Source of the DNA: Wallemia ichthyophaga EXF-994
Taxonomy: Eukaryota; Fungi; Basidiomycota
DNA: 32,000 nt
Direction: 5' to 3'
Assembly: GCF_000400465.1 (NCBI RefSeq)
Contig: NW_008806280.1
Coordinates: forward strand, 390,001 to 422,000
Made by a program: the position numbers and the translations under genes. Below the pieces are notes generated by a model that was not told the origin of the DNA, made no database searches, and saw nothing but the letters and a program-made list of their open reading frames with translations. This document shows, piece after piece, positions 3,124 through 27,505 of the stretch (its first letter is position 1; each line of letters opens with the position of its first letter).

Positions 3124-6100
3124 ATGGACGATTTGACAAATAGGCCGCACAATTTGAAGCACGAAGACGACGACGACGTGCAGATTAGATCAGATATAAA
3201 TCTCAAGAGGAAAGAGAGAGAGAATGACGACGACGAAGTACAAGTCGTTAGTGAGCCAGATGTATGTGAAGATACGCGAACGAAATGTGATTTTAACGCG
3301 TGACTTATAGCCAATGATGGAATCACTCAAAAAGCTGCTATCTAAATCAACCCTGTATTCCAAAATTCTCCAGAAAAAGATGTCTGATCCCTCTCAGCCG
3401 CCACCACCCAAAGAGAAAGAAGAAGTCAACGAGTCGGATACAAAGCCAGATCCGAAGCCACAGTCGAGGGCTGTTAGAGTCGACGATAAATCCATCGCTC
3501 CCCCAGCTGCTCCCTCAGTTCCCTCCCCCGAAAAGAGGAAGTCATCGCGCCCTAATGCCGGTATCAATGCTCAAATGGAGAAGAACAAAAGAGAGGCTGA
3601 AATGCGTAGAGAAGCTATCGAGGCACGCAATAAAAGGAGTCTTCGTTCACAGAGAAAGAAAGATGAGTTGGACAAAAAAACTCGTGGCACAGCACGCAAA
3701 GCTAAAGACAAACCGAGAATTGAGTTCTCAGACTCTGAGGAGGAGCAGAGCAAAGATAAAAACAATAAGAAGGAAGAAATTCTTTATAGAGACGACCTCG
3801 AGTCTGATAACGCACAATCTGATTATGATCAACAAGAAAGGGAAGACAGTGAAGACGACGAGTATGACGATAAGCCGAAGCACTCCAAGGTTGTCGTCAG
3901 TTCATCAGAGGAAGAGGAAGATGAAGAAGATAACGACCAAGATCTTCCCCATTATCCCGGTCAACCTGCTCTAGTATCTGGCACAGAGCTACGTGACTTC
4001 CAGAAAAACGGTGTCGAGTGGCTTTCTACCCTTGACTCTAACGGCTTCTCTGGTATTTTGGCCGATGAGATGGGTCTCGGTAAAACACTCCAGACTATCA
4101 CTTTCTTAGCTAAACTCATGGAAGATGGCAGCAAAGGTCCCTTCCTTATCATCTGTCCTCTTAGTGTTGTCAAGAACTGGATAAACGAGTTCGCCAAGTT
4201 CACTCCAAAGTTACAACCGGTTATGTATCACGGTGACGCCAAGAAGCGCGCCGCAATCCGTCAAGAAATGAAAACGCGTGGATTCTTTAACCCTAAACTG
4301 AAGAATAAGTGGGCATTACAGCCTAGGATTATATGTACGACTTACGAGATGGCTATTCGCGATGCACGTACATTCAGGAGAATTGAATGGCGGTATATTG
4401 TCGTAGATGAGGGACACAGGCTGCGCAATATCGAGACGAAGCTTCTCAAAGAGCTAAAGACTTTTGTCAGTGCAAACAGACTGATAATCACTGGTACACC
4501 GCTTCAAAACAACCTCAAGGAACTATGGAGTCTACTCAACTTCTGCTTGCCTCAGTTGTTCGATGACTTGGAATCATTCAATACCCTCTTTGACTTCAAT
4601 AGAGTGAACAGTGACGAGAATGGCAATTCCGAAGAAAGGCAAAATGAGACTGTACAGTTGATGTCTACGCTGCATGAAATCCTACAGCCATTTCTCCTGC
4701 GTCGTCTCAAGTCAGATGTAGCTAAAGGCCTTCCGCCCAAGAAGGAATATGTGCTTTATGCACCACTCACCCAGAAACAAAAGTCCGTATACGACGCCAT
4801 TCTTAATCGTCAAATTAGATCAGCTATTTCTGATCTCAAGACTCACGGTGATATTGATGGCGAAGGAATGAGAAAAGAAGAAAAGGGCGACGAAGTTCTT
4901 GCCCCACGTGCATCCAAATACCGCAAGAAGCATGCGAACAATGATGACATGAAAATTGATGACTCGAAATCAGATTCAGAAAACCTAAGTCCCACTAACA
5001 ACGCGAGTGACGGAAACAACAAGTCAATCTCAGCGTATTTCACTAAACCTAAATCCCAAGCTAAGACCAATGACGATGACAAAAGCAAGATTATAGTTAT
5101 AGAAGACAGTGATGATGACGACATAAAATCCCAGTCAGCTAAAAAAAAGGAAAAAAACGCAGATGATACGATTAAGACTGTCGAAAATGGCAAGGATGAT
5201 AAAATGGAGGATGATGATTTCGAAGCAATGTTGATAAAAGAAGCTGAAGATCATCGCCTTCGTGAGGAAGTTGCTAATGGCAAACGCAAATCTTTACAAG
5301 CAGCTCGCGACGCTGCGAAGAAGGAGATGGGTAATATGAAATTCGAGAATCTTGTCATGCAGGCGCGCAAGATATGCGCACATCCCTATATTTTCCATTG
5401 GGATGTCAATGAGGAGAATGAGAAGACTGTGGGGAGAGATCTAGTCAATGCGTCTGGTAAAATGATGCTTTGTATGCGTTTATTGGAGGAGTTGAAGTCT
5501 AGAGGACACAAGACACTTATATTCTCTCAATTTGTCACTTTGCTAGATATTCTTGAAGGTGAGTTAAAAAGCTTTAATTGAACATCGCTTCTCACTCTCC
5601 GCAGACTACCTCGTCGATGGACTCGGCTGGAACATTTGTAGATTAGACGGTAGCACATCACAAGAGGAGCGCGAGTTGCAAATTGATCTCTTTAACAATC
5701 AAAGTGACTATGATCCAGACGCACCAAAGGTCTTTTTACTGTCAACAAGAGCTGGTGGGCTAGGTATTAACCTTGTCGGTGCGGACTCGATCATTTTCTA
5801 CGACAGCGACTGGAATCCTCAAGTAGACATCCAGGCTATGGACAGAGTACACAGGATAGGGCAAACAAAACCAGTTCTGATTTTCAGATTAGTGACTAAG
5901 AATTCTGTCGAACAGAAGATGATGACGACTGCCAAAGGGAAACGCAAACTTGAGTCGATGGTCATCTCACAAGGTCATTATAAGCAAGACAATAGTGGAA
6001 AGAAGGTCAATACAACGCACGAACGCTTAACTAAAGCCTTGGACGAGCTTGATATTACTAATGTTAGGACAGCTACTGATGACGAGAAGCTTATCAGTGA

Positions 6101-6392: not shown

Positions 6393-9300
6393 TCACTGTC
6401 TCTTAAATTGATTGAGTCTTCCCCTCAAGTCGCTGATTTGAGTATTTTGAGAGTTCTGCTGTCGTTGTGAAGACCTGCGCGAGTTAGGATCTCTACTATC
6501 CGTAGTACCAGACGCTGATCCTGATTGATGGCTTTGAGATTGAGGTTGAGAATGAGGCTGTGAAGCGTGTCTCCTAGGAGTAAACGCTTTGTTTTTACTC
6601 AAAAGGCTCGGTTGTCTCTTTTGTGGTGTACCCGATATTGGCTCGGACTTTTTGCGACTTCTGGTCGCTGGTGACGCCTCTGCTTGACTTGGATTTGGGT
6701 TTTTACGAGGCTGATGCTCTTCATCATCATCGTCTCTAAGTCTCTTCTTAGCGTTGGCACGTGGCGATGCACTACCTTTAGAGGCTTCGCTTGATTTCTT
6801 TTGAGTCATTTGTGTAGTATACGTGCTCTGAGTGCTTTGTGTTGCATGTCTCGTTCTAGATACTATTTCAGAAGACGTTGAAACCTTGGCATCGTCATCT
6901 TTCTTCGAAGAGCCAGATTGGGAACCTGGTTTTGGATGCTCCTTGATAGCAGCTTTGAGACGGTCGACCTGGCTATTGAGTCTCTTAACTGTCTTCTCAA
7001 GCTCAAGACACTTATCTTCAGCTTCTTCCGTCATCTGCTGAGCTGACTCCAAGCCTGACTCTAGCTGCTGTATGCGTTCGCGAGCCTCTTCAAGTTCTTC
7101 ACTGTTTGAGCTGTCAGAGGATATTTAGAACGTCGTGAAATAGTACTCACGCATCAGCTGTCGCTGATCCTGATCCCCCATTTTGGACCTTATTTAGCAG
7201 CTCCTCCTTTTCTGATTCCAAGGTAGCTAAACCATTACTTGCCACAACCAACTCTTCTTCCTTGCTTGAAATAATAACCTTGTACTCATCAACCTTTGCA
7301 TTACTAGCTGACACGGAAGTGATAGCTTCATCACGCTGTTGTGTTAGTGCTCCGATTTCAGCTTCCAATTTGCCAATATCCTCAATAGCAGCTGATTGTG
7401 TGGACAGTGCGTCATTAAGGGTGAAAATTTCAGCTTCCCTTTCTGTGACAAGATTAACATTCTCGTTGAGTTGCTTTTCAACTTGCTTCAGTTGCTCAAT
7501 CACCTCGCTGTAGCGACTGCTAGTCTCCTCAGCTTCACGAAGTAACGTCTGATCAGTCTCAACCTTTGCTAAGAGTTCATCAAGTTTAAGACGCTTTGAT
7601 TCCATTTCATCTTCTTTCGATTTGATGACTTGTTCAAGCTGTGTCCTCAGCTGACTATCTTCCTCGAGTTTCACGTTGAGGGTTGTGATTTGTTCATTCA
7701 ACATACTTCTCTCATTTTTCGCACTTTTGAGGAGTGTGTCGTATTCAACTGAAATTGCGATTAGTAAATTGCAAATAGCAAAGCCAGACACAACAAACTC
7801 ACCTCTGCTCTCCTCAATCAACTTTGTCGAGCTATCAAGCTGCTGAGTAAACTGTTCACGCTCCTCTTGCAACGCCTTGAGCTCCTCACTAATCACCTTA
7901 TGCTCCTCTCTGAGTTCTTCGTAGGCTTCGCTATCAACCTCATTGCGTCCTTCTTCAACACTCCTCAACTTTTTCTCTAAGTCCTCAACTGATCTCGTCA
8001 ACTTACTTGACTGTTCATGAGAAGAAAGTAGTAATTGCTTTTGATGCTCCACTTCACCATCATGTGTGTCGATCAATCGGTTAAGTTCCTCCTGCTTATG
8101 TTCGTACTCGCGTGTAATCTTCTCTAGCAAAGTAGTAATCTCTTCGAGTTTGATATTATCACTAATACGATCTTGACGGAGAACTTCCAACTCGGTTTCG
8201 ATGTTAGCTGCAACTCGCTTCTCATTTTCCGTTTCAGAGTCTTTTTGAGATTTATAGCCGTCAAATTCATGTGATAGTGTGGCGTGGTCGTTCTTTGCAA
8301 TAGTGAGTTGCTGCTGGAGTTCAGCGATGCGTTCGGAGTGGTCGTGGGTAATAGTAGACAACTCAGCTTCGACTTCCTTGACACGCTCGGAGCGAGTGTC
8401 TGTCATCGAATCGAGTTGCTGGTGGAGTTGAGCGATATTTTCATCGTAAGTGTGCTTTGCAGCAGCCAGCTCAGTTTCTACTTCCCTGACACGATCGGTT
8501 TCATTAGAGTGAGTGTCCGCCACAGAAGCGAGTTGCAGCTCAAGACCAGCAACACGCACAGCATGTTCCTCAGCCATCTCCTCAGCCTTGTTTTGCAGAT
8601 CAGTTATAAGTTCAGAAGCCACTCTGTGCTCCTTCTTAGTGGCGAAAATGACCTGCGCCATAGCGTGCAATTTAGATTCGTGCATCTCGTGGGTAATGTA
8701 CTCGGCCTGCAGTGCGTGGAGCTGCTTCTCCTGCTTCTCCTCATTCTCCTGATCAGCTTTTTTGAATTCTTCGTAGAGTATGCGGATACGCTTCTCGCTT
8801 TCATTCACAGCTTCATTTAGTTTCTCGTCACGTTCAGCTATGGCTTCACGTAGCTGGCGCTCTAGCTGCATAATACGACCACGTAGCTCGTCATGCGTTG
8901 GTTGACGCTCAGCGAATAGCTGAGCGATAGTCGCGTCCGTTGAATGATCAGCGATACTGCCATCACGATGGTTTTCACTCCGATTGAGAACTTCATCTGC
9001 CATTACAGATTCATCGAAATAGCCTCGGCTCTCATTCGACATGCTTCCTTCTGCGGCCTGGCCCATGCTCAATCCGATTCCAGTAGCGAATAGGGAATTG
9101 TTGATAGTGTTGTTGGATGTCGGCTCATCTTCACTGCTACTGCCAATATCAACCACTTCTCCACTGAAGCTTTGCGACGGTTGCTGGTTGCGTTGCTCTA
9201 TACCCTCTCTAAAGAGATTGTTGAGTGTGTCATTGCCACCAACTGAAGATCTCATGCTTTGTTCCCTAGTTTGGTTTGCACTCTGCTCAAACAAGTTTCT

Positions 9301-11871
9301 GAGGGTTGAATTGCCGAGAGTCGAATTACCAAGAGTCGTGTCACCACCAGCTGACATGTTTTGGAGGTGTGCCACATTCTCCAAACTCTCGTTCAGCTTG
9401 GTTTCAAGATGGTGTACTTTCTCATCCGCCTTGTGGACTTGATCGACAAGCTCTCGTATACGCTCCTCATACTGTATCTCCATGGTGTGATACTCCTCTT
9501 TGTTCTTAGCGTCATCGACCATCACTTCACCTAAACTTTCATCATCGAGGTTCTTTTTCTGCATTTGGATCAATTTCTCGTCAAATTTCTTGCACGTCTC
9601 ATCGAGTTGGCGCTGCTTCTCTGAGTTGAGTTTCTCTATATCCGCAGCGTGTTGAGCTTTGAGTTCCAAAAGTACCTGCTCTTTTCCAGCCAAATGCTCA
9701 ACAAATTCATTCTTCTCGCTGCCAAGCCTCCTAACATTGGCTTTGAGGTCGGAGATAATACCATCGTGATGATCTTCATGGATTTGTATCGCAGCCTCCA
9801 CTTGACGATTGCGATCTTGGCTGCTATCTTGATGAGATTGCTTAACTTTGGACAATTCGATAGCATGCTCATTGCGCAAATTCTTTATCTCCTCTGAATG
9901 TTTCAGGCGGGTTTGGTTGAAGTTTTCTCTGATCGTATTGGACATGTCGGTCAGCTGTGACAATCTACTATCTGTGAATTTCGCTCTTTCATGTTCGCTT
10001 TCGAGAGCAGCGTTGAATTTACTATCAATCTCATCTATTCTAGCCTCATATGCCATGCGATCCTTATCAAACTCAACTGTAATTGACTGAACGCGATCTT
10101 GTGCAATACCATAGTTTACTTCAGCACTTTGCAATTTCTCGCGAAAATCATTTAGACGATCCTGCAATTTCTCAACAATCCCAACTGCTCCCTCCTGTAA
10201 TGTGAGATGATGCTCTTCCCAATCTTGCAAATCCTCTTTAAATTCCTGTGCTTCTTCTTGGGATGTTTTCAGAGCAGTCTCTAACTCTACAATTCTCTCT
10301 CGATGTCCGGAATATGAATCTTGAAGTGCTTTGTATTGAGCAGTAGCAGCATCAATCTTGATAAGATTTTGCGTATCAGTCTGCTCCATGTCCGTTATTT
10401 GTACCTTGGCTTGACTGAGAGATCTCTCGAGTGATTTCGTGGTCTCATTCGACTCATGTCTTGTTTGCTCAAGTTGGACGGCGATTTTCTTCATTTGTTC
10501 TTCGTACTCGTGGCACGTGATTCTGGAGTTTTTCAGTTCCTCAGTCAACTCGTTTCGCGTGTGTACCAAACTAGAAAGCTCTGTTTCATGCTTGTCCAAG
10601 TCCTTTTGATGAACTTGTTGTGAGAACTTTAATTCAGTCTCTGAAAAATGTGCTCTACCGAGGTTTTCATCGCGATCAGCTCTCAATCTGTGAATCATAG
10701 CCATCAGACGAGAAATTTCGGCGAGAAGTTTAGAATTTGAAGACATATTAAGGGCAGATTTAGACACTGGGGTGGACAAAGCATCTTCCAACTCGGATAT
10801 AGACATTTCGTCGTCTTTATTTTGTTGATGAGATGCGTTACTTTGGCTAGTTCTTGACTGCTCTTGAATAAGTTGGAGTTGCAACTGCCTTACCTCATTT
10901 TGTGCGCTCTCCAAAGCGACTGTCTTTTTATCTAACTCACCTTGAATGCTATCCGATTGAGCAAGGAGAGATTCAAGATTCTTTTGCGCCTCATGACCAT
11001 CCTGAGCTTCTTCTCGCAACTGCTCAATTTCGCGCTTAGAGGAGCGTGTTAAGGCCATAAGCTGATTCTGAGCCATATTCAAGTCTTGTTGAGATTTAGA
11101 TAGTTTCTCATTAAGACTTTCTATTTGAGAATTGAGAATTTCCTTGATTGATACCGAATCGCGTCTGTTAGATGAGGTGTTTTGATGTGAGGATAATTGC
11201 ATAACGTTGTCGTCAATCTCCTCGCGTAGTTTCTTGTTAAGAGATTCTGAAGCCATTAGCTGGTTTTGAATCTCAATCATCTTCTCAGATAACCGCGTCT
11301 GTTATGTTGATTAGTGAGGTGGTTGTAGAATAAGCGAGAGTAGCTACCTTGTCTGTTGTGGCGTCTTTGAGATTGGAATTTGCACTATCCAAGCGAGACT
11401 CTAGTAATTTAATAGCGTCATGATTAGAATGAGACGAATTGAGACGTTTCTCAAGGCTGCTCTCTGAAGACTGGAGGCCTCTGAGTTTAGCGTCTGAAGA
11501 TTCCATGGTAGTTTGACAGTTAGCCAGCTGTAATTTGAGTTTCTTTATTTCATCTGTGTGCTTGATGGAGTCATTCTCGAGTTTGTTAGCGCGTTCAGAT
11601 TCTCTAGAGGACTGTGGTGGGTGAGTGGATAGGAAACGCCTCAAGATAACAACCCACGCGATAAAGGGCGTCCTTGTAGTTGATTGACAGGTCGTTGTAG
11701 TCGTTATTAGCCATGAACAGCTTGTTCTCGTAAGAGCGTATATCATCGTCTGGAGATGGATAAAGATGGATATAAGATTACATCAACAACAGCATCACCA
11801 AACCCACCTTTACTAGTAAGCTGCCGTTGTAGCTTCTGGGTCTTGTCGTCGTCGTGTTGTGCAGACGACAT
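6393..11871 (-). CDS. Very long coiled-coil protein of unknown function, with a disordered basic/NLS-like C-terminus (1743 aa)
   Basis: ORFs 11285-11746, 7147-11280 and 6393-7052 join via introns 11750-11807, 11612-11657, 11299-11347, 7749-7802 and 7111-7150. The sequence is E/Q/K/L heptad-rich throughout with KKRLR near the C-terminus. No catalytic motif recognised. Confidence 0.85.
8305..8488 (-). repeat. Degenerate 108-bp (36-aa) tandem duplication inside the coiled-coil gene
   Basis: gagttgctgctggagttcagcgat at 8305 recurs as gagttgctggtggagttgagcgat at 8413. ctcagcttcgacttccttgacacg at 8362 recurs as ctcagtttctacttccctgacacg at 8470. Confidence 0.8.
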
Positions 11872-12618: not shown

Positions 12619-15305
12619 TTATATCCTCTCGTAAACTAAAACATAAACATTCTGGTCATCATTTTTGAAGCTGTACTGGTGTTAATTCGGTTAGATCACC
12701 TTCAGCAACTACTCACCTCTCTTGTAAGAACTCCTCTTCCGTTTTCTCCCGTATTGTCTCATCACTAGCCCAATACCACTGCAGGTCATCACGATTACCT
12801 TCCTCATCTGTGTTTTCATCCTTATCCACATCTCTTCTCTCTCTACTCGCGAATGAAGTATAATGACCACTAATCATAGTGCGACCACAGTGATTAACAG
12901 TCGAGCGCAGTCTATACCTAGTCGAGTTAACCGGGTAAGCAAGTTCAGCGAGTCGTTTGAAGTCTTCTGTGGTGGTAGGATCGATGTCGTCGGGGAGGTT
13001 TGACTGTGATTGTGATTGTGACTGAGACTGGCTTGTCTGTTTTGGCCTTTCTGGTGCAATGTAGGCGCCGATATCGAGGAGAGTAGGAAAAGTGATATTA
13101 TCGAAGATCTTACTCAGAGCGAAACCACCCACACTACCAAAGCGCTTCAAATGCAATACCAGCACTGGTGGAGCGATGGCGATGAGTGATCTACGCAATG
13201 CTTTCGTACCAACCACTTGCTTTTGGCGGGGGATATAAGCGACTGTGTCACCGTAGAAAGCTCGCCAATCCTTTTCGTCGATTTCTTCCTCGTCCTCGTC
13301 GTCAGCGTCGACGTCGTTATCTTCATTTTCCGCCTCGCTTTCTTCAACTCTCTCTTTGTCACTCTCACTCTCATTCTCATTCTTATACTCCTTTTCTTGG
13401 TCATCCAGCCTCTCGCCTTCGTGTAGAGGCGCCATTCCGAGAGCAGCCGGTCTGCCCTTGTCTGGGGAAGCCGATAAGCTAGCGCTGCCATTCCTTCCGT
13501 TCCTGCTCCTGCTCCTGCTACCACTTCTGCCGATTCCCCCACTCCTACTCCTACTTTTCGAATCCTTGTACCGTCTAATCATCTCGACATGCACCTCATT
13601 TTGCATCTTCCAGCACCCGTGGCAATGAAATTCATTCTCATTTTGGAGTGTTTCGATACCTGCATATCTCTCAAAGGCCTCTTCAATGCCGCTCTTTGGT
13701 GTGGCGGATGAGCTATGTGAGGTGGTAGAGGTGGTAGTGCCATTTGTAGGGCCATTTGACATGGGTTCACTCTCACTCTCGCCATTGACAGTAGCATTGG
13801 CATTCCCACTGCCATCTTTGGTAGTATCACTACTGGGTTTTGGGGGCGCTTGGCGTAGCGCTGCCAGCACCCCGTTCTGCGCATTCGATCCATTCACCGT
13901 TGGGCCATCTTTGAAGCCGCTATTTTTACTGCTATTGTTACTTTTATCTTTGTCGCTCGGCGACGCGTTTGCATTCCCATTCGCACCCGCACCCCCACTC
14001 GCCATCTCGCTCCCCAATTCGGTCATACTGAGACTGTGCGGTGTGGGGGTAGAGCTGGGAGTGGAGAGGTCACCGAAGAGTTTCTGGGTGTAAATTTTAT
14101 CCTCAATGGTGCGCCTGCTCCTGCGTGTCGTATCTTCCTCACTAGCACCAGCATTAGCGGCAGTAGGAGAAGACTGAAAGGCTTCTTCACCCCCACTACC
14201 ACCTCTGCTAATCCTCTTGCTGACTCGCCGACCGAGGCTACTACTGCTGCTGCTGGGAGGTGGAGCGAGTTGAGAGGGCGACGAGCCCATCTGCGGACTG
14301 CTGGATGGGGAAGGGGGCGGGAAGGGAGCTAGTCCAGATGCCCTTCTGATGCTGCTCTTGGGTGTGCTGCTACTGCCCAGAGAGAAACTGTTCCTGAAGG
14401 AGAAACGCTTCGATTTGGTTGGTTGTGGTTGTGACTGTGTGTTTGTTTGCTCTCGCTCACTTTCACCCCCCTCCTCATTATCATTCTCCTCCGTATCACT
14501 CAACACTACATCTTCCACAGTCAGCTCATCCTTACGCGCATTAACGCCCTCTTTGTTACTGCCGAGCAAGTTTTCGCGTATAGACTGCCTAAATCCTCTC
14601 CTTTTGGGAGCCTTCTCATGCTGATCCTGCAAAGCGAGAGAGATGTCCAGAAAAGGTTCGTAGACGTGATAGATTTGCTTGCAACTTGCACATATAATCA
14701 CATTCACAACCATACCCTCGCACAGGCGATCGACAAAGGTGGTAGGGGTGAGTGATTGATAGTGGTGAGGTTGCAATTTCTTCTGCTTGCGGTTCAAAAC
14801 CTGTTTGAGGTGGGGGTTGAGGGAGTAAATCAGGTCGAGCTCTTCCATGCGCATAGCATCAAACAGCTGGCGAAGGAATTCATGGGAGTCTTGCTGGCCG
14901 TAGTCGTTGTATTGGGAGTACTTAGATGCCATTGCTTTGAGCATTTCTATTGGGATTATTGGGGATTTGGTGGATTTCCAAGCATCCCTTAGTGTATTTA
15001 GAAAGTGGCAAGTTAGTTTGAGTTGCTCGTTGTAGCCTTCCTCTAGCCAGACTCGGAGTGCGGGGGAGTCAAGTAGATCAAAACCCGATGACGCCGGTAC
15101 CTCCGATAGAGCGATATCTCTCAATAAATTCAACGAATAGATAGATTGCAGGAGTGAATTAATGAAGCAGCTAGATAGAGTGGCTGTGAGAAGTGTGTCC
15201 AATTACAAATCCAAACCCACGTATTAGTCCTGTGTGTTGTTAGAGAAACTAGATATTAATTAAACAGCCCACTCACAAATTACGCATTCCAATTGGTTTA
15301 TCCAT
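12619..15305 (-). CDS. Ubiquitin-specific protease (peptidase C19, USP) with a large disordered insertion (847 aa)
   Basis: Cys box GMRNLTNTCFINSLLQS is assembled across introns 15230-15276 and 15171-15220. Also QQDSHEFLRQL, CASC/CHGC zinc pair, LVLHLKRF, His box NHCG..SGHY, and terminal VYVLVYER after intron 12671-12716. Confidence 0.92.
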
Positions 15306-15395
15306 TTTTTATTTTATTTTTAAATTCCACGTTGGTCGTCCGTCTTATAGGTCATCATTATCACCTCATCATTCAACCCCTGGTGTTCCTAGATA

Positions 15396-15951
15396 ATGCA
15401 GTTAAATCTAATTTTTATTTTTTTATTTTTTGGTTTTATAGGGGCGACTGGGAGTAGTACAGAGAACACCACAGAAAGTACCACAGAGAACACCATAGAA
15501 AGTACCACAGATACCATCCACTGGTCGTGCACTCAACGTAACTCGTAAGCTATCCACTCCAATCCAGTTGCACGTTCCCCTCACTTCCTACAGCTGCGAA
15601 CCATGTCCACCAGATAACATTAACGACGCTGTATGCCAACCATTTGGTAATAGACAGCTACTGCGATGTAAAGATGTCAATGATATGGAGCACCCCGATA
15701 ACCACCTTCTTACTTGGCACGCGTGTGGTAGAATTAAACACACTGAAAAGATTGGCTTCTTACACTTTATTTCGCTCAACCTAGCTCTCACCGTCACCGC
15801 AACCGTTTTCGTCATTATTCGCAGTAATCATCTTGCCAACGCGCAATACAACACTCTAGCTAAAACTATTGGTCTCCCTGACTCCAACCTCAAAAGCCCT
15901 GATGGTCCAATCGCTGCTGCAGGCCGTTTACTTAAATTCTTAAGAACTTGA
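15396..15951 (+). CDS. JTB (jumping translocation breakpoint)-like single-pass membrane protein with signal peptide, S/T-rich repeat and 6-Cys ectodomain (168 aa)
   Basis: Hydrophobic N-terminus MQLNLIFIFLFFGFIGA. Intron 15545-15593. C-x5-C-x2-C-x9-C-x10-C-x18-C, then GRIKHTEKIGFLHF, a TM helix and VIIRSNHL. Similarity to JTB is from recalled sequence. Confidence 0.75.
15459..15515 (+). repeat. 24-bp tandem repeat (about 2.4 copies) encoding TENTTEST/TENTIEST
   Basis: acagagaacaccacagaaagtacc, acagagaacaccatagaaagtacc, acagatacc. Confidence 0.9.
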
Positions 15952-15959
15952 TGCATTAT

Positions 15960-16928
15960 TCACATTCCTAATCTTTCAGCCAGTGTTTTTGTATGTACAG
16001 TTTGACCTGGTTGCTTTGATTGAACTGCCTTTCTTCGAGCACTCTGTGTACTTTGATTACTCTGTGTACCCTGTGTGCTCAATCCACCCCCTACACTCAT
16101 CCTATCTAGTAGAGATTGACCCGATTGACCCGATTGAACACCCGTGTTTTCCTTCTTTTTCGCCTTTGGTTGCATCTGCGTCCGTTCTAGGATCGATAAA
16201 ACAGGTTTAGCTGGTGGGTTCTCCTTCCTCTGCCTAGGTTTAGACTGTTTGGATTGAATCTTTGGGTTGGTATCTTTGGATTTACGTGGTGATGGTGTTG
16301 GTGCGATACTATCAGCGTACATTTTTCTATCTGAAAACAACGAGTGGACATCCTCCAACGCCGTCTTTTCCACAAGGTTCACAACAAGCACCTTTCCATC
16401 TGCGTGCAATCCATCGAAAGCTTTAAGAGCACTTTGAGCATCTACCAGCCTCTCGAAAAATATATTCATTGCCAAGCTATCATCGGAGCTGTTGACTGGG
16501 TTTGGTGAGGTGTGAAGTATGTTACCATAAGGTGATAATGCCACTTTTACATCCTCTTGAGACGTTCCCGGTGCAAGATTGTTGATAATTATTTGAGTTG
16601 GTTGGTGAGAAGAGCCACGAATGTTGATTGACTGTTGTTTCTTCTCATTCTTCTTCTGGCGTGTTGCTAAACCAGAAATTCTAGAACCCAGTGGAGTATG
16701 TGTTGTGTCTGTTGTATTCCCCGCCTGTTTATTAAACAAACTCGGATTTAACATCCTAGCGCCTAGTTCACCACCAATAGATTTAATATAGAGATCATTT
16801 CCCCATTTACCACTATCGCTCGGGTTTAGTGGACGCTGCCTTGTATTGTAAGGTTTAGCAGATAATCTTTTATTCTTTGTTGATTTATCTGGACGCGTTA
16901 GAAGTGAGTCGATGGATTCAGAGGACAT
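15960..16928 (-). CDS. Single-RRM RNA-binding protein, ALYREF/POLDIP3-like architecture (322 aa)
   Basis: RRM from QIIINNLAPGTSQEDVK to FDGLHADGKVLVV. KWGNDLY precedes the RRM. Likely start is ATG 16928 in a CACCACC context. The ORF-track start at 16967 overlaps the TAF10 stop. Confidence 0.75.
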   Translation of the reverse strand: MSSESIDSLLTRPDKSTKNKRLSAKPYNTRQRPLNPSDSGKWGNDLYIKSIGGELGARMLNPSLFNKQAGNTTDTTHTPLGSRISGLATRQKKNEKKQQSINIRGSSHQPTQIIINNLAPGTSQEDVKVALSPYGNILHTSPNPVNSSDDSLAMNIFFERLVDAQSALKAFDGLHADGKVLVVNLVEKTALEDVHSLFSDRKMYADSIAPTPSPRKSKDTNPKIQSKQSKPRQRKENPPAKPVLSILERTQMQPKAKKKENTGVQSGQSGQSLLDRMSVGGGLSTQGTQSNQSTQSARRKAVQSKQPGQTVHTKTLAERLGM

Positions 16929-16963
16929 GGTGGTGGTGATAAATAAAAGAATACAACTTAAGT

Positions 16964-17347
16964 TCAAATATAATAATCAGGTTTACGCGCATTAATCCCA
17001 TAATCACTCAAAGCTGCCGTGAGATCATCTGCTGTCAACACAGTCTTTGATTTTGATGTCCCCGTCGGTCTACCTCTTCCACCCGGTCCTGCACTTGTAC
17101 GAATTCTTGCATACTGATACGCGTCATTAGAGATATCGCTTATAAACTTCTGCGATGCCAGACTGAATAACCTCTTTAATCTCTCATCGTTACACTCGAA
17201 TCCCGCCTTATTGAGGTAATGGTCAACCACTTGATCTGGTATTAAAGGCTCATTTGCACCTAATAAATTCATAAATTCCGTCATTTTTTTATCATGCGCT
17301 GTTTGTGCTTCTGTTTTTTTATTTTCTAAGTTATTGCTTGAGCTCAT
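16964..17347 (-). CDS. TAF10: TFIID/SAGA subunit TAF10 (127 aa)
   Basis: PLIPDQVVDHYLNKAGFECND.RLKRL.SLASQKFISDI.NDAYQY.RIR and VLT.DDL..AL.DYGIN.RKPDYY. Intronless ORF. Confidence 0.96.
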   Translation of the reverse strand: MSSSNNLENKKTEAQTAHDKKMTEFMNLLGANEPLIPDQVVDHYLNKAGFECNDERLKRLFSLASQKFISDISNDAYQYARIRTSAGPGGRGRPTGTSKSKTVLTADDLTAALSDYGINARKPDYYI

Positions 17348-17626: not shown

Positions 17627-20428
17627 ATGGATGAAATTACACGCCCGAGGAAAGTACAATTCTCTCAATCAACCGATGGCGGTGATAGCAATCAAGGATC
17701 TTACAGTTTAGATCCTAGATTTGACGATTACCATTTGGATTCAGATTCGCAAGGTTTACAGATACAGCTCATCAAAAACTCGTTGAACAGGTCTCACTCA
17801 CGGCCTTCAAGTGTTTCATCTGCAGATACTTCCAACTCGCACGAAACTAAATTTCTGCCTCATGAATCCACTTCGGCAACCACAGAAACTCCAGCGTCTT
17901 CTAATCCTTCAACCCCCACTCAGGAATACGCAGTGCCGATCCCTTTCGGTGAAATTGATGGTCTTCCACAACCCCCGTCTTCTAAGAAAGGCTCCTTCGA
18001 CTACTATACAAAGAAAGCTAGAAAATTAGTCGGGAAAAAGTCAGAAAGCAGTCATAACAAGAAAGACAAAAAATTCATCACAAACAAACATGATCCTGAA
18101 TCTGGCGACATTTCTCACTCCCATGATGACCCTTTCAGCTTAGACTACAAGCCATCCAAATCTAGAGGTGTTCTCTCCACCCTACTCACCCTCCAAGAAC
18201 AAAGAGAACATCATAAGGCTAAAAAGAAGGCTAAAAAGCAAGCAAAGAAGGATCGACGCGCTAGAAGTGTCTCTACGTCTTCTTCTTCTTCTGCAGGTAC
18301 TGTCTTGAGTAACTCAGGTGCTGCAGATCAACTCCCTGAAAAACCACCTCCTACTTCAAAACCTCAATTGCCAAGAAGCCATTCTGAAACAAATCTCGCT
18401 GATGTTGCTAATGGTGGTCTCTCTTCCGCTCAGGAAGAGGATAAAACTTACAGACAATACAAACCTTCTGCTTTCCGCATCCCTGATCAATTAAGATTGC
18501 GTCCTGAGAAATACAGACCCAAAACTGCTAGATCTTCCGCAGGTGTTTTTGGTGCGCTTGTCAGCTCAGGTCAGAATTTATCTGGCTTCGTCAGCCCCCA
18601 TTCTACAGCGATTACGCCGAATCTCAAACACAAAGGGTATAGACTGCAGCGATACTCGCTCGACCCCACATTAGACATCAAGGAGTTCACCAAGGATAAT
18701 CAGGAGGCTGAAAAGGCTGAGTCGTTAGATATGAAGCACTCACGCTCGTCGTCGACTGATTTGGAATCACTCGCTCCATCGTCCCCACCGCTGCACACCG
18801 CTCAGAAGAAGAGCACGCCCAAGTCGATGCTCAAAGATCAATTTAACAATATGGCAAGTGGATTCAAGAACCCGAAGTCACCTGCGACAACACCCGACGA
18901 GAAGATGTCCCAGAGTTCATCCATCGACTACTTCAGCCTGCCACTCAAGGAGCGAGAGAAGGAGAAGGAGAAGAGTGAGGAGCGGGAGCTTAAAGAGCGC
19001 AAGAAGAACCTCGCTAAGCGTAAGAAGGAAGAGCTATACATTACTATGCATGTCGCTACAGTCCTCCATCGACAAGAATTCCTACTCAAGCTCAGTCGCG
19101 CGCTAATGATGTTCGGTGCTCCATCCCATCGTCTCGAGGCGCAAATACAAGCTACAGCGCGCGTACTCGACATACCCCTCCAAGTCGTCTATCTGCCTGG
19201 ACTTATGTTGTTCAGTTTCGGTGATGTAGAATCACACACATCGGAAACCAAATTCTTGAAACAGTCAGCTACACTTGACCTGCGCAAGTTGCTCGTCACC
19301 CACCAGCTCTATTGGCGCGTAACGCATGACGAAATGTCGGTCAGCGATGCGTCTAAAGAGTTAGATGTGTTGATGACACAGAAGGACAATTTCAACGCAC
19401 TGTCTAATATAGTCATCGCAGGTTTCTGCTCAGCTTTCATCACTCCATTTGCCTTCCACGGCTCTCTCATCGACGCTTGTCTCGCTGCTCCACTCGGCAT
19501 GCTTCTCGTAGCTGTTCAGCAGATAGCAGTAAAGAACGATCTGTTCACTAACATATTCGAGATCTCAATGGCAGCTGTAAACTCTTTCCTTGCTGCGTCG
19601 TTAGCAGAGACTAACAAAGCATGCTACTCAGCTGTAGCTTCCGGATCGGTTGTGTTGATCTTGCCTGGATATATTATTCTCTGCGGCGCGCTGGAGATGT
19701 CAGCGCGGAACATTATAGCAGGCAGTGTGAGAATGTTCTACGCTATCATCTTTTCGTCTTTCCTCGGCGTCGGCATGTCGATTGGATATCAGTTTTTCAG
19801 ACTAGTGACAAACCAGTGGGACAACGATGACAACAGCGCAGGTAGCGATTACCGCTGTGCATCTGTACATACGCCGGATGCCCCCTTTTACCAGAAAAGC
19901 ATAGATCCTTATTGGTACATTCTCTGCGTACCTATTTACGCCATTTTCATCAGTTTGCGCAATAAGGCTAGCATCAAGAGCAGGGAGCTACCTCTGATGG
20001 TAATAATTGCAATTTGTGGCTTCACTGTTAATTACTTTGTCAGACAGCGTATCTCACGCATTGATCTGTCTAGCGCTGTCGGCAGTTTCACTGTCGGATT
20101 GATTGGTAATCTTTGGGGCAAATTCACTACTTCCAGACCGGCATTTACTATGACTGCCAGCGGTATCATGTTACTCCTCCCAACTGGTTTATCTGATGGC
20201 GGTATTTTGTCAGTTGCTACGACTTCTACTTCTAACAAGTGGGTTAACTGGCTTTTAATCGCTCACTCACTCACTCACACTTTTTTTTTCAGCTCTCTTG
20301 GACTCGGAACTAGTAGCAGCCTCATTCAAGCTGCTATCGGCCTCACTGTCGGCCTTTTCGCAGCCGCCGTTGTTGCTCATCCTTTTGGTGGTACACGTAG
20401 GAGACGTGCTGCCATCTTTTCCTTCTAG
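17627..20428 (+). CDS. PRM10: Prm10-like ThrE/DUF1212-family multi-pass membrane protein (915 aa)
   Basis: Long disordered N-terminus, then RQEFLLKLSRALMMFGAPSHRLE, about 10 hydrophobic segments and ILPGY. An in-frame intron at 20239-20292 is read through by the ORF track. Confidence 0.85.
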   Translation: MDEITRPRKVQFSQSTDGGDSNQGSYSLDPRFDDYHLDSDSQGLQIQLIKNSLNRSHSRPSSVSSADTSNSHETKFLPHESTSATTETPASSNPSTPTQEYAVPIPFGEIDGLPQPPSSKKGSFDYYTKKARKLVGKKSESSHNKKDKKFITNKHDPESGDISHSHDDPFSLDYKPSKSRGVLSTLLTLQEQREHHKAKKKAKKQAKKDRRARSVSTSSSSSAGTVLSNSGAADQLPEKPPPTSKPQLPRSHSETNLADVANGGLSSAQEEDKTYRQYKPSAFRIPDQLRLRPEKYRPKTARSSAGVFGALVSSGQNLSGFVSPHSTAITPNLKHKGYRLQRYSLDPTLDIKEFTKDNQEAEKAESLDMKHSRSSSTDLESLAPSSPPLHTAQKKSTPKSMLKDQFNNMASGFKNPKSPATTPDEKMSQSSSIDYFSLPLKEREKEKEKSEERELKERKKNLAKRKKEELYITMHVATVLHRQEFLLKLSRALMMFGAPSHRLEAQIQATARVLDIPLQVVYLPGLMLFSFGDVESHTSETKFLKQSATLDLRKLLVTHQLYWRVTHDEMSVSDASKELDVLMTQKDNFNALSNIVIAGFCSAFITPFAFHGSLIDACLAAPLGMLLVAVQQIAVKNDLFTNIFEISMAAVNSFLAASLAETNKACYSAVASGSVVLILPGYIILCGALEMSARNIIAGSVRMFYAIIFSSFLGVGMSIGYQFFRLVTNQWDNDDNSAGSDYRCASVHTPDAPFYQKSIDPYWYILCVPIYAIFISLRNKASIKSRELPLMVIIAICGFTVNYFVRQRISRIDLSSAVGSFTVGLIGNLWGKFTTSRPAFTMTASGIMLLLPTGLSDGGILSVATTSTSNKWVNWLLIAHSLTHTFFFSSLGLGTSSSLIQAAIGLTVGLFAAAVVAHPFGGTRRRRAAIFSF

Positions 20429-20737: not shown

Positions 20738-21634
20738 CTAGTGAACAGCTTCGAGTATTCGCCGAGCTATACTCTCAAACACCTTGTATGTCGGTATACT
20801 TTGGTAGCGCTCTATGAGAGTTGTAGAGATAGCTTCCTGATCCTGCACAGAGAGTGTAATGCCGCCCTGCTTGGCCTGCTCCTCCTTCTTCATCTGCAAA
20901 ATTTTGATATCATCGAGCAGCTTAACGAGGAGGGGATCTATGGGAACTTTACCGAGGAATAGGATATGTTCTCTCTTCGCGAGTGATTCTCCGCCGCCCG
21001 TAGAAAAGACGTTAGTGCAATCAGCGCAATGGGGACAAGCGTAGCCAGACATGTTCTCTATGAGACCGAGGATGGGTATGCCGACAGTCCTTGCAAAAGT
21101 AATTTCCTTCTGGACGTCGCTCAACGCTACCGCTTGGGGGGTTGTGACGATGACGGCATGTATCCTATCGGCGAGAGGAGCGAGATGTTCAGTGAGGGCT
21201 ATATGTTCATCGGATGTGCCTGGAGGAGTATCGATGATGAGAGTGTCGCAATCCCACTTGACATCAGCGAGGAACTGGCGAATCATTGCGCTCTTCTTTG
21301 GCCCACGCCACACAACGGCATCGTTCTTGCTCTTGAGGAGGAAAGCTATTGACATTACAGACAGCTTTCCAGCGCGGTCGGCATGTACAGGCACCCAACC
21401 CTGACCGTGGAGACCCATGTGGACAGAGTGACCATCGAGACCGAGCATCCGCGGGAGAGAAGGTCCCGTGAGATCGACATCTAGCAATCCCACTTTTGCA
21501 TTGGTTGAAGTCGTCGCTGATAACGCCAACTGGGTGGCTACCGATGATTTACCCACCCCGCCTTTACCACTAAGGACGAGTATTATAGACTTAACATTCT
21601 GGAGACGCTTAACCACTGGACTGTCTAGATCCAT
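20738..21634 (-). CDS. CFD1: Cytosolic Fe-S cluster assembly P-loop NTPase Cfd1/NUBP2 (298 aa)
   Basis: [44 protein letters not shown] and CPHC. No N-terminal 4-Cys ferredoxin motif, which would mark Nbp35. Confidence 0.93.
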
Positions 21635-23786: not shown

Positions 23787-24850
23787 ATGGCGCAATCACA
23801 GCCAGCGCAGAAATACGGACCAGATTTATCTGTGAAATTGGTAAATATGTGTATTTTGCAGTAAATTTATTATTGAAACTTTAATTCCCTTAGATTTGTC
23901 CTGAATGCCAGATACCCAATCCAAACGTCGTTGAGGAATTCAGCTCTGGTGATCTAGTATGCGGTGATTGTGGTTTAGTTCTTGGAGATAAGGTCGTCGA
24001 TACGCGCTCTGAGTGGCGTACATTCGCCAACGACGAGGGTGACGATCCCTCGCGTGTCGGTGCAGCCAGCAATCCACTTCTCGACGGCGTCGATGAATTT
24101 GAGACGATGATCTCTTCTAGAGACGGCAACTCGGGTATTTCTAAGGAACTGCAAAGAGCTGCTGCGAAATCATCTCATGGTCGAAGCGAGCGCAGCTTGA
24201 TGAACGCGTTCCGCGATATTTCCTCAATGGCTGATCAGATATCCCTTCCACGTTCCATCGCTGATATCGCTAAACAACTCTATAAACGTGTCGACGAAGA
24301 AAGACTGCTTCGTGGTAAATCCACCGACGCTATCATCGCTGCTTGCATTTTTATAGCTTGCAGACAGGCTGGCGTGCCTCGTACTTTCAAAGAAGTCTGG
24401 GGTCTTACACGCGTGCCTAAAAAAGTCATCGGTCAGTGCTTCAAAGTACTTGAAAGAGCTTTCGGTAGCAACTCTCCATCTATGACGCCAGGTGTTGACA
24501 CTCCAACTCTCAACAATGTACAAAGTGGTCCAGAAGATCTTATGGCGAGATACTGCAACCACCTCAGTCTTCCCGTGTGGCTCCAGAGTGGTGCTGTCGA
24601 TGTCGCTATTGCTGCTCGTGAACACGGTGTTTTGGCTGGTAGATCCCCTATTACTGTCGCTGCTACGTGTATTTACTTTTCCTCTGCTCTCTTTGGCTAT
24701 CCAAAGTCTGCTTCGGAAATTGGTAACATCGCAGGCGTCGGCGATTCAACCATCAAATCAGCATACAAGATATTGTTCAACGAAAAACAACCCGTACTAG
24801 CATCTATACACGACAAAAGAGCAAACGTAAGGAATTTACCTGACCCATAA
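23787..24850 (+). CDS. SUA7: Transcription initiation factor TFIIB (336 aa)
   Basis: Zn ribbon CPEC..GDLVCGDCG, B-reader DTRSEWRTF, cyclin repeats (AACIFIACRQAGVPRTFKE; GRSPITVAA). Intron 23841-23893. Confidence 0.96.
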
Positions 24851-24970: not shown

Positions 24971-27505
24971 CTACTCACTCAAGCTCATTCCGAGCTTGAG
25001 GGCATCGTTTGATGACATAACGCACCAATCAACGATATCCAACTCCCTCTTAGTAAGGTCTCCTAGGTCCATATGACTGAGGAACCACTTTAATCCATTC
25101 GCCAAGTTGGAGATTGGAGCTGCTTTCATCATGATACCGTCGATCACACTCTTGTCACCCCTCTTGCTGTCCAAGTTGAGAGTTGGTGATGATGACTGTA
25201 TCGATAGGAAGAGATAGACAAAGAATTTGTTGAAGAACTCTCTAGCCTTTGGGGTGAGCGTGGGGAATATGACTGGTTTGAAGATAGACAGTGGTACTGA
25301 CGACTTAGCAACCCACCAGGCTAAAGATTTAGCGAGATTGTCTATACGACTGGTGCGCACGGTCGATCCATCTCCACCAGTCGCTCCGTTTTTCAATATC
25401 TCCGATCCACCCACGCCTGCTTCACCGAGCTCTCTTAGGAAATCCCACATGACATACTGCAAAGTGATTCGAGTTGAATGCGACTGACTGAGCAAATGCG
25501 AGGCAACCATTGTGTAATAAGGATTGTAGCGTTTTTCCTTATATTCTGGTTAGCGTTGTATTGTCAGAATAATAATAAAAAAACCCACATTACCAGCACA
25601 GTGGACAATGACTCTGACAATCTCACGTTGCTGCACCTCAGATAATCCCAAGCCACCTAATCTATCACAAGCATCAATGTAATCCTCACTGCTCATGAGA
25701 ATAATGAAAATACTCCGTCTCACATCAGTATTCATGCCCTGTTTCTTAGCCAGCTTGACGAGGGCATCATCGCCACCTTTATTTTTAGCAAAGTCCTCCT
25801 TTTTATCGACAAGCGGGTTACCACTCCAGGCACTACCGACAAGCCACCATTTTCCTTTCGAGTCAGCTTGTCGCAGGTCTATGAGGCTGACAGTGAGGGC
25901 TTCTGTGGTCGACACGCCCGGTCTTTTGTCGATGTTTTTTATGTATCGCTTTATTCTATCTCGGGATTCACTACCACCTTGAGCACCTGGAAGGTTTTTT
26001 ATCTTGTTGTTTTTCAGGTTGTTGAGACACTCAAGCATGAATTTGAACCGTGAGCCGAGCTCTTCCTTGTTTATACTATCAACTTTATTCTGCACAGCAA
26101 GGACAATTTCCTTGAGTGATCCAGGATCATCGTGGCGCAACTGCTGACCGGCACTCCTAACTATGCGCAATACAGCATCGATCTGCGCCTCATTCAATCT
26201 GTCGGTCGATATGAGTGCGCGTATTAGATCGTATATGAGGGCATTGGAGAGACTGCCGAGATTGTAAAGCTCGGAAAGCATGCTGATGAGATTGAGATTT
26301 TGTCTAGCCCCACCTTCCGTTGAGTGGGACAATGGATTCGCGTCGAGTTTTGTAATAGTGGTTTGAGTGAGATGGGCTATAAACTCCACACCAACTAGTC
26401 GATGCAAAGCTGATATAAAACCGGCGTAGAGGATAACAAAGCTGTCGAGCATGTTATCACGTGATCCTATTGTAGAGAGCACTAGATCTACTATAGAACT
26501 TGTCACGTCATGTCTGGGTTTGGTGCGGTATAGGTCGAGGAGTTGTTGGAGGATAGATTCAATGTTTGCTTCTGAAAGTCTGTTCAACGATCCCTTGACA
26601 ATTTTGTTTATCTTTTGTAGCTCTTCTGATTTTTGCACATTGACGCTTTGTGATTCTTGCAGCTTACGCTCACGGGCTGCTCTGACAGCTGGAGGGATGT
26701 ATTTAGCTGGTTGGGAGGAGGGTTCGTGAGTTTGCGTCTGAGTTTGTGTGTTTGTATCGTTGATAGCTTCATCCATAGTTTCATCCAAAGCTGTGTCACC
26801 TTCTTCATCCTTGCTGCTGCCAGCATCTTCATCATCTTCCTCGCTTTCTTCACTTTCCTCACTTGCTTCACTTTCACTGGGGTCACCCTGGTTCAGATTA
26901 TCATCGATCATCATCTCCTCATCATCGACTTGCTCATTATGCTCCTGCTGATCATCGAACAGACGACCCTCAATGCCATTGACATCATCGAGAAGATCGT
27001 CTAGATCATCCTTAATATCGTCAGACTTCTTATTCTTCAGTTGATATTCGAGCCAAGCGATTTCATCGTCTTCGGGGTTAGATTTAGTTTTCTTTGATTT
27101 TTTAGAAGGATCAACGAGTTGCTCAATAGCCTTTGATTTGTCTGTGTCCTTCTTACTGCTGTCGCTCTTACTGCTGTCTGCCTCCTTTATCGGCTGCTGA
27201 TAAGCCTTCTCTCTTCCCTGGGTACGGGCATCATTGGGATCTAGCTGCTTCTTAACGACTGGAGGTGCGCCTTTATGTGACTGTTTCTTATTCGACCTTA
27301 TTTCCTTACGAGTCTCCTTCCTTGTTCTTAATTTACGAGACGGTGTCTTCGTACCGTCTGCCGAGCGTTAGACAATCTATCAACACTAAAACCACGCAGA
27401 CTGACACTTATCGTCGATCTCCGCAACGAGATTCTGCGGTAATTGAGTAGTTTTGTTTGCAAATTTACCCGATTTCGCAGATTTCCCAGATTTCGTAATG
27501 GCCAT
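24971..27505 (-). CDS. SGD1: Sgd1/NOM1 nucleolar MIF4G+MA3 protein (811 aa)
   Basis: KYIPPAVR, LNRLSEANIESI, GKWWLVGSAW, MNTDVRRSIF..LMSSEDYIDA and EKRYNPYY. Introns 27358-27405 and 25538-25588. Confidence 0.9.

Follow-up and report, generated by a model that had tools for sequence, protein, structure and literature searches.

JTB (PAR; O76095; Pfam family PF05439; ectodomain structure PDB 2KJX) is a human protein, small and highly conserved, whose literature, ranging over cancer translocations, mitochondria and mitosis, is confusing, and a defined cell-biological role, in the SYS1-ARFRP1 module of the Golgi, has been described only recently. In a 2025 preprint, human JTB was found to be Golgi-localised and to co-purify with SYS1 and ARFRP1 in immunoprecipitation-mass spectrometry, and JTB and SYS1 were predicted to pair via their transmembrane (TM) helices, with the cytoplasmic extensions of both forming the docking site for ARFRP1-ARL1 (bioRxiv 10.1101/2025.09.09.675133). 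ARL1 and ARL5, and through them the golgins and GARP, lie downstream of SYS1-ARFRP1 (PMC6829661, PMC11585589). Cells in which JTB is knocked out resist the SubAB cytotoxin, with glycans and surface binding of the toxin unchanged (PMC6526310), and JTB is enriched in ricin-resistance screens (PMC13223377); these results indicate a defect in retrograde transport. Negative genetic interactions with NatC/NAA35, moreover, are common to JTB, ARL1 and ARFRP1. Here we describe a JTB gene at positions 15396-15951 (plus strand) of a stretch of 32,000 nucleotides from the basidiomycete Wallemia ichthyophaga EXF-994 (contig NW_008806280.1, positions 390,001 to 422,000), hereafter the window. The locus is, with little room for doubt, an intact two-exon gene for a fungal orthologue of animal JTB. 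An initial annotation, made from the letters alone, had called the molecular function of the family unclear, a statement that is partly outdated in view of the SYS1-JTB-ARFRP1 complex reported in the preprint.

A TAG stop lies two codons upstream of the ATG at 15396, which is the first one in frame after that stop. Exon 1 (15396-15544, 149 nt) encodes the signal peptide, a stalk rich in Ser/Thr and C45, the first of the cysteines, and is followed by a GT donor at 15545. The intron predicted from the sequence (15545-15593, 49 nt) is in phase 2 and reads from GTAAGC through a pyrimidine-rich segment to CCTACAG, and exon 2 (15594-15951) encodes the remainder of the Cys-rich ectodomain, the TM helix, the cytoplasmic tail and a TGA stop. 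Spliced together, the two exons yield a protein of 168 residues; the reading frame is intact and the splice sites are canonical. Three Logan assemblies match the window at 99% identity over 1.7-3.2 kb; in the coding sequence they differ from it by two substitutions only, both synonymous. A mechanical list of open reading frames (ORFs) breaks the gene into separate plus-strand ORFs of 50 and 127 residues. In the collection of 5.8 billion proteins that we searched, the sole copy of the window protein is an 88-residue fragment beginning at an internal Met (P0064), and no full-length product of this genome turned up there. Because the gene has been called only as this fragment in the Logan assemblies, the initial annotation was right in saying that its first exon had been missed.

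The closest relative in the same collection is the hypothetical protein E3Q24_01850 of Wallemia mellicola (P0001), which is 63% identical to the window protein and already has a precomputed PF05439 match. This best match and a GC content of 45.8% suggest, from the sequence itself, a member of Wallemia distinct from W. mellicola. Its gene (locus L004, SPRA01000016.1) carries a phase-2 intron at the identical position (DWSCTIRDS/CRPC, compared with HWSCTQRNS/CEPC in the window), which supports the splice predicted here. In the W. mellicola gene, KFV and NRQ are each followed by a further intron (window 15745-15835 versus L004 3285-3445), and the absence of both from the window gene implies that the window lineage lost two of three introns. 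An intron after EFV seems to be widespread among basidiomycetes. As annotated, E3Q24_01850 has 138 residues, begins with MAIIATIKA and lacks a proper signal peptide. An in-frame ATG eight codons further upstream (L004 2978-3001, ATG at 2978) gives MRIFLICIMAIIATIKA and restores the signal peptide; the deposited start is therefore probably wrong, and the protein eight codons too short.

In a Pfam scan of the spliced protein, PF05439 scored 25.3 bits against a gathering cut-off of 22.1 (E 1.7e-5; model positions 22-109 of 110), and was the sole family to exceed its curated cut-off. When the protein was split, the TM helix and tail contributed 14.4 of the 25.3 bits and the ectodomain alone gave no reported match. 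As neither half was significant by itself, the PF05439 call depends on both halves jointly. The margin over the cut-off is small (approximately 3 bits), and we therefore ran controls with shuffled sequences and independent profiles. None of 10 shuffled versions, five of which preserved the positions of the cysteines, the signal peptide and each segment's composition, matched JTB at E<=10, indicating that the match is more than chance. An exhaustive hidden Markov model search with a four-sequence profile recovered 287 clusters, formed at 50% identity, with E<=1e-3, of which 191 had E<=1e-10. In an alignment of 59 members of the family, 47 match PF05439 individually, with a best E of 4e-16.

To connect the fungal and animal proteins, we aligned profiles with hhalign, using 39 basidiomycete sequences (the window protein first), 7 from Mucoromycota and 11 vertebrate JTBs including the human one. 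The basidiomycete profile matched that of Mucoromycota at 99.7% (E 1.6e-26, 110 columns), and the latter matched the vertebrate profile at 96.3% (E 2e-9) over 90 columns that take in the ectodomain, the TM helix and the tail; the direct comparison of basidiomycetes with vertebrates gave 81% (E 1.2e-5). A word-indexed homologue search with the Mucoromycota profile did not reach animals. Neither the spliced protein nor exon 2 gave a Pfam match at E<=10 to PSI (PF01437), to midkine/pleiotrophin or to other Cys-rich families, and membership of the PSI or midkine families was rejected for this reason. Thus, the initial description of the protein as JTB-like has held up, with profile support from both PF05439 and hhalign and no better Cys-rich family.

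The same relationship is evident at the level of single residues. All six cysteines (C45, C51, C54, C64, C75 and C94) are invariant in the 59 family members and align column for column with the six of vertebrate JTBs. The joint alignment of the window protein with Mucoromycota and vertebrates adds E101, F108, R126, L130, L/V138 and I142, whose human counterparts are E102, F109, R127, L131, V139 and I143. Within the fungal family, E101 and R126 are invariant and F108, L138 and I142 are at least 90% conserved, while the six cysteines together with the CQPFGNR motif make up the most invariant part. The human sequence served purely as bait; it was confirmed to be 100% identical to P0234 and to PDB 2kjx_A. 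The human pattern quoted in the initial annotation is correct, as P0234 (human/chimp) has cysteines at C48, C60, C63, C74, C85 and C96, together with GPTG, EQRLFWKF and VIIRQRQL.

The window protein has two peaks of Kyte-Doolittle hydropathy, at residues 1-21 (1.77) and 105-125 (1.95, the highest window). From these peaks, from a helix in an AlphaFold2 (AF2) model and from the position of R126 after the second hydrophobic segment, the product is predicted to be a small type I membrane protein with a cleaved signal peptide, a short stalk that could be O- or N-glycosylated, and a single TM helix. In the predicted topology, the six-Cys ectodomain of approximately 55 residues would be lumenal and a conserved helix of approximately 18 residues cytoplasmic. 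The predicted signal peptide (MQLNLIFIFLFFGFIGATG; 15396..15452) coincides with the first hydropathy peak and with AF2 helix 3-15, its cleavage site having been placed by eye. It is followed by the stalk, in which a 24-nt tandem repeat (15459..15511; 2.2 copies, Tandem Repeats Finder score 99, 96% matches) encodes TENTTES/TENTIES. Residues 19-41 are 57% Ser/Thr and contain one N-x-T sequon, at N24. The repeat is identical across the three Logan assemblies, so there is no length polymorphism among them.

The Cys-rich domain, predicted to be lumenal or extracellular, runs from C45 to C94 (15528..15726, with the intron inside) and includes CEPCP and CQPFGNR. Its spacing, C-x5-C-x2-C-x9-C(QPFG-x6)C-x18-C, is exactly the one first noted for this protein, and the signal peptide, Ser/Thr stalk, six cysteines, single TM helix and short tail listed in the initial annotation were all found again where it had placed them. 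The predicted TM helix (residues 105-125, FLHFISLNLALTVTATVFVII; 15757..15819) is preceded by the juxtamembrane motif E101-x3-F-x2-F108 and falls inside AF2 helix 98-142. The second hydrophobic segment is followed by 43 residues. These comprise the putative cytoplasmic tail helix RSNHLANAQYNTLAKTIG (15820..15873), whose R126, L130, L138 and I142 are conserved in the fungal and human alignment, and an extension LPDSNLKSPDGPIAAAGRLLKFLRT with the stop (15874..15951), shared by the window protein and W. mellicola P0001 alone, for which a lower-confidence helix (155-167) is predicted.

With the 59-sequence alignment as input, AF2 returned a model with a mean pLDDT (predicted local distance difference test) of 81.9, and of 90-96 across residues 41-140. 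Three main strands are predicted (43-47, 69-77 and 87-93), and a single uninterrupted helix (98-142) begins in the juxtamembrane region, crosses the membrane and continues into the tail. A single-sequence model was not used, given its pLDDT of 56. The predicted strands agree qualitatively with the human JTB ectodomain, which has been described as distantly midkine-like and as an antiparallel beta-meander of three strands (PMC12292960). Sequence searches of the PDB with the single protein, the four-sequence profile and the 59-sequence profile returned no JTB and missed 2KJX. The only weak PDB matches (E ~0.04), to the TM6 region of a sphingosine-1-phosphate receptor and to mS38, were rejected as hydrophobic or basic-helix noise.

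We then considered how widely the family occurs in fungi and how it has been annotated. The named clusters cover all subphyla of Basidiomycota as well as Mucoromycota. They include Agaricomycetes (Hebeloma, Flagelloscypha, Hydnum, Clavulina, Cantharellus, Marasmius), Tremellomycetes (Saitozyma and a Tremellales species), Pucciniomycotina (Melampsora, a microbotryomycete, Cyphobasidiales) and Ustilaginomycotina (Tilletiaria, Sympodiomycopsis, Pseudozyma, Violaceomyces, Malassezia), besides Wallemia and many Mucoromycota and Glomeromycotina. Among the matches listed, none of the approximately 50 named fungal entries is from Ascomycota. The initial annotation had proposed an ancient opisthokont membrane protein; such an origin is plausible for the taxa sampled, which are Basidiomycota, Mucoromycota and vertebrates only. 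It had also stated that fungal members are usually annotated as hypothetical. This is true of basidiomycetes, whose entries are labelled 'hypothetical' or 'uncharacterized', but not of several Mucoromycota entries that UniProt already calls 'Protein JTB', nor of the W. mellicola protein with its PF05439 match. Since these names and this match predate our analysis, the recognition of JTB in fungi is not new; the window gene adds a previously unannotated member to a family whose presence in fungi is on record in databases but has not been discussed in the literature. A 2025 review still gives the range of JTB as 'from nematodes to humans' (PMC12292960), and a literature search for PF05439 returned nothing.

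Many database entries of the family look mis-predicted (P0004, P0007, P0033, P0061, P0072, P0079, P0101, P0104, P0114 and others), either with introns retained between CEPCP and EPFCQ or with read-through after EFV (..EFVVS..) and loss of the TM helix, and P0056 (778 aa) and P0118 (408 aa) appear to be fusions to neighbouring genes. Naming is inconsistent as well, with P0136 and P0207 carrying the automatic UniRef label 'PSI domain-containing protein' within one and the same family. The 'Protein JTB' from the Anthurium amnicola transcriptome (P0212; UniRef A0A1D1ZJS2) is 45% identical to the JTB of Calcarisporiella and ranks amid the Mucoromycota; contamination by a fungus may account for it, in which case it would not speak for a plant JTB. 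Malassezia-type members (P0110/P0172, and P0142 from M. restricta) are very short, at 121-128 aa. P0110 is under the Pfam JTB threshold (13.5 bits), and P0172, of the P0110 cluster, was found on 173 metagenome contigs, presumably from skin samples.

The juxtamembrane region, TM helix and tail that are conserved between fungi and vertebrates are the regions that the human model assigns to contact with SYS1 and the GTPase, and it is on this basis that we propose a function. By homology with the human data, Wallemia JTB could reside in the Golgi, associate with Sys1 and Arl3 and act in trafficking, which we consider a serious possibility while stopping short of expecting it. Wallemia JTB would then be a type I protein of the late Golgi whose TM helix packs against the multi-pass Sys1, and the one-sided stripe of the tail helix (R126, L130, L138, I142) would help to build a cytoplasmic docking platform for Arl3/ARFRP1, an N-acetylated Arf-like GTPase. 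Arl3/ARFRP1 would in turn recruit Arl1 (and ARL5 in animals), GRIP golgins and GARP, and so promote retrograde traffic from endosomes to the trans-Golgi network. Going further, and only tentatively, fungal JTB might be a conserved third subunit of the Sys1-Arl3(ARFRP1) receptor that sets off the recruitment of Arl1/GRIP golgins and GARP at the late Golgi. It would go back to the fungal ancestor and have persisted in Basidiomycota and Mucoromycota but disappeared from Ascomycota. Such a loss would explain why the yeast studies behind the module never came across JTB.

Several observations weigh against this proposal. The human SYS1-JTB-ARFRP1 complex comes from a single preprint combining immunoprecipitation-mass spectrometry and structure prediction, no fungal JTB is known to have been studied, and the literature that we searched contains no paper naming JTB and fungi together. 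When the AF2 model was compared with the PDB by Foldseek, there was nothing at E<=0.001 and 2KJX was not among the top 50 matches listed; probably, the long TM helix and the small nuclear magnetic resonance (NMR) target defeat its retrieval. To our knowledge, the S. cerevisiae work defined the Sys1-Arl3 module without any JTB-like subunit. Together with the lack of an ascomycete among the named matches, this means that some fungi can at least dispense with JTB for the module. A docking role of the TM helix and tail only, moreover, does not account for the lumenal Cys-rich domain, which is strongly conserved. Lastly, the older literature assigns mitochondrial and mitotic roles to JTB, and here a function in membrane potential, in apoptosis or with Aurora kinase and the chromosomal passengers would be the alternative. 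The reports behind these roles concern human JTB/PAR only (summarised in PMC12292960), and one supporting mitochondrial paper has been retracted (PMC3352868). Both the cleavable N-terminal signal peptide and the disulfide-rich ectodomain indicate the secretory pathway instead, genetic and proteomic data group JTB with Golgi factors, and the fungal sequence gives no hint of kinase binding, so that we regard such a role as very improbable for the Wallemia protein.

A position at the cell surface deserves more weight than a mitochondrial or mitotic role, yet we still consider it unlikely. Here JTB would be a cell-surface or secreted orphan receptor whose ectodomain binds an extracellular ligand or a component of the wall or matrix, an idea that goes back to the midkine-like fold in the NMR structure of human JTB's ectodomain (PMC12292960), and the TM helix and tail would be a mere anchor. 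A signal peptide, a glycosylatable Ser/Thr stalk and a Cys-rich ectodomain are typical for surface proteins, the cysteines and CQPFGNR form the part that varies least among fungi, and a UniProt record names the Melampsora member 'Secreted protein'. A passive anchor, however, would not need tail and juxtamembrane motifs that are conserved from fungi to vertebrates. The stalk is lineage-specific, being missing from W. mellicola, and human JTB is found at the Golgi, and its loss affects intracellular transport rather than surface binding. The remaining explanation, that the locus is non-functional, either two ORFs paired by chance or a pseudogene in decay, whose Pfam match reflects no more than Cys spacing and a hydrophobic stretch, could draw on the 3-bit Pfam margin, on the lack of significance of each half alone and on the absence of a full-length protein of this genome from the protein collection. 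It is effectively refuted by the 191 clusters at E<=1e-10, by the negative shuffles that preserved cysteines and composition, by polymorphism that is synonymous only in an intact frame with canonical splice sites, and by an orthologue in W. mellicola, 63% identical, that shares both the intron position and the neighbouring ubiquitin C-terminal hydrolase (UCH) gene. Taken as a whole, a JTB orthologue with a Golgi role alongside Sys1 and Arl3 is the explanation that we favour, with some reserve.

The surroundings of the gene are an ordinary housekeeping set. Upstream, a 193-bp intergenic region (15203..15395) separates the JTB ATG from the end of the divergent UCH deubiquitinase ORF (12713-15202, minus strand), and is presumed to contain a bidirectional promoter and the 5' untranslated regions common to the UCH and JTB genes. 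Downstream, only 8 bp lie between the JTB stop (15951) and the stop end of a convergent minus-strand ORF of 335 residues (15960-16967), and the 3' untranslated regions of the two genes must therefore overlap. The 335-residue ORF has no Pfam match at E<=1e-5, and no Pfam domain was found at the same threshold in an uninterrupted ORF of 1377 residues (7147-11280, minus strand). Further away, the plus strand carries genes for a protein kinase (404-1555), a SNF2 ATPase (3314-5581), a ThrE-domain membrane protein (17627-20428) and TFIIB (24107-24850), and the minus strand those for a NUBPL/ParA-type P-loop NTPase (20738-21634), an MIF4G/MA3 protein (25550-26914) and importin beta (28404-30527). Gene calls on L001 place a TAF10-like gene between the 335-residue ORF and the ThrE gene.

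Clear JTB orthologues across Basidiomycota and Mucoromycota offer genetically tractable systems outside animals in which the role of JTB can be tested, and the conserved TM and tail motifs single out R126, L130, L138 and I142 as residues for mutation. Should JTB indeed be a third component of the Sys1-Arl3 receptor, non-ascomycete fungi would become microbial models for it, and the apparent absence from ascomycetes, if true, would account for the failure of yeast genetics to find it. For annotation, the point is more immediate: in this genome the gene has been overlooked or cut short, and many of the family's basidiomycete entries start at the wrong position or retain introns.

Finally, the window protein can be placed among its known relatives. 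W. mellicola has the same divergent UCH neighbour upstream, at L004, and the two proteins have in common the Wallemia-specific C-terminal extension (...SPDGP.AAAGRLLKFLRT). They differ in that the W. mellicola protein is without the Ser/Thr stalk and its 24-nt tandem repeat, and the downstream neighbour there is a dCMP/cytidine deaminase gene rather than the convergent 335-residue ORF. The 'Protein JTB' entries of Mucoromycota (Mucor lusitanicus A0A168PTS8, Choanephora, Phycomyces, Syncephalastrum, Phascolomyces) are members of the family as well and share the tail motif QY..LA.RIG. They are nearer to the animal consensus, with 44-60 Pfam bits against 25 for the window protein, and read ..FGNKEPI.C.. 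where the window protein has ..FGNRQLL.C... PSI domains and midkine/pleiotrophin resemble the ectodomain as small disulfide-rich beta modules, without a Pfam match in the window protein. The ectodomain fold of 2KJX contains three disulfides. With human and other vertebrate JTBs, the Wallemia protein shares the signal peptide, the six-Cys ectodomain with its CxxC, the single TM helix, the juxtamembrane E-x3-F-x2-F and a short helical tail of the form R-x3-L-x7-[LV]-x3-I. Identity to human JTB is only about 24% over the aligned core, and the two proteins differ in the first Cys spacing (x11 in human, x5 in the window protein), in the last loop (x10 and x18), in a GPTG[YF] motif that stands in the place of QPFGNR, and in the end of the tail, ..QIESI in human and ..TIG here, while the Ser/Thr repeat stalk and the 25-residue C-terminal extension are found in the window protein only.

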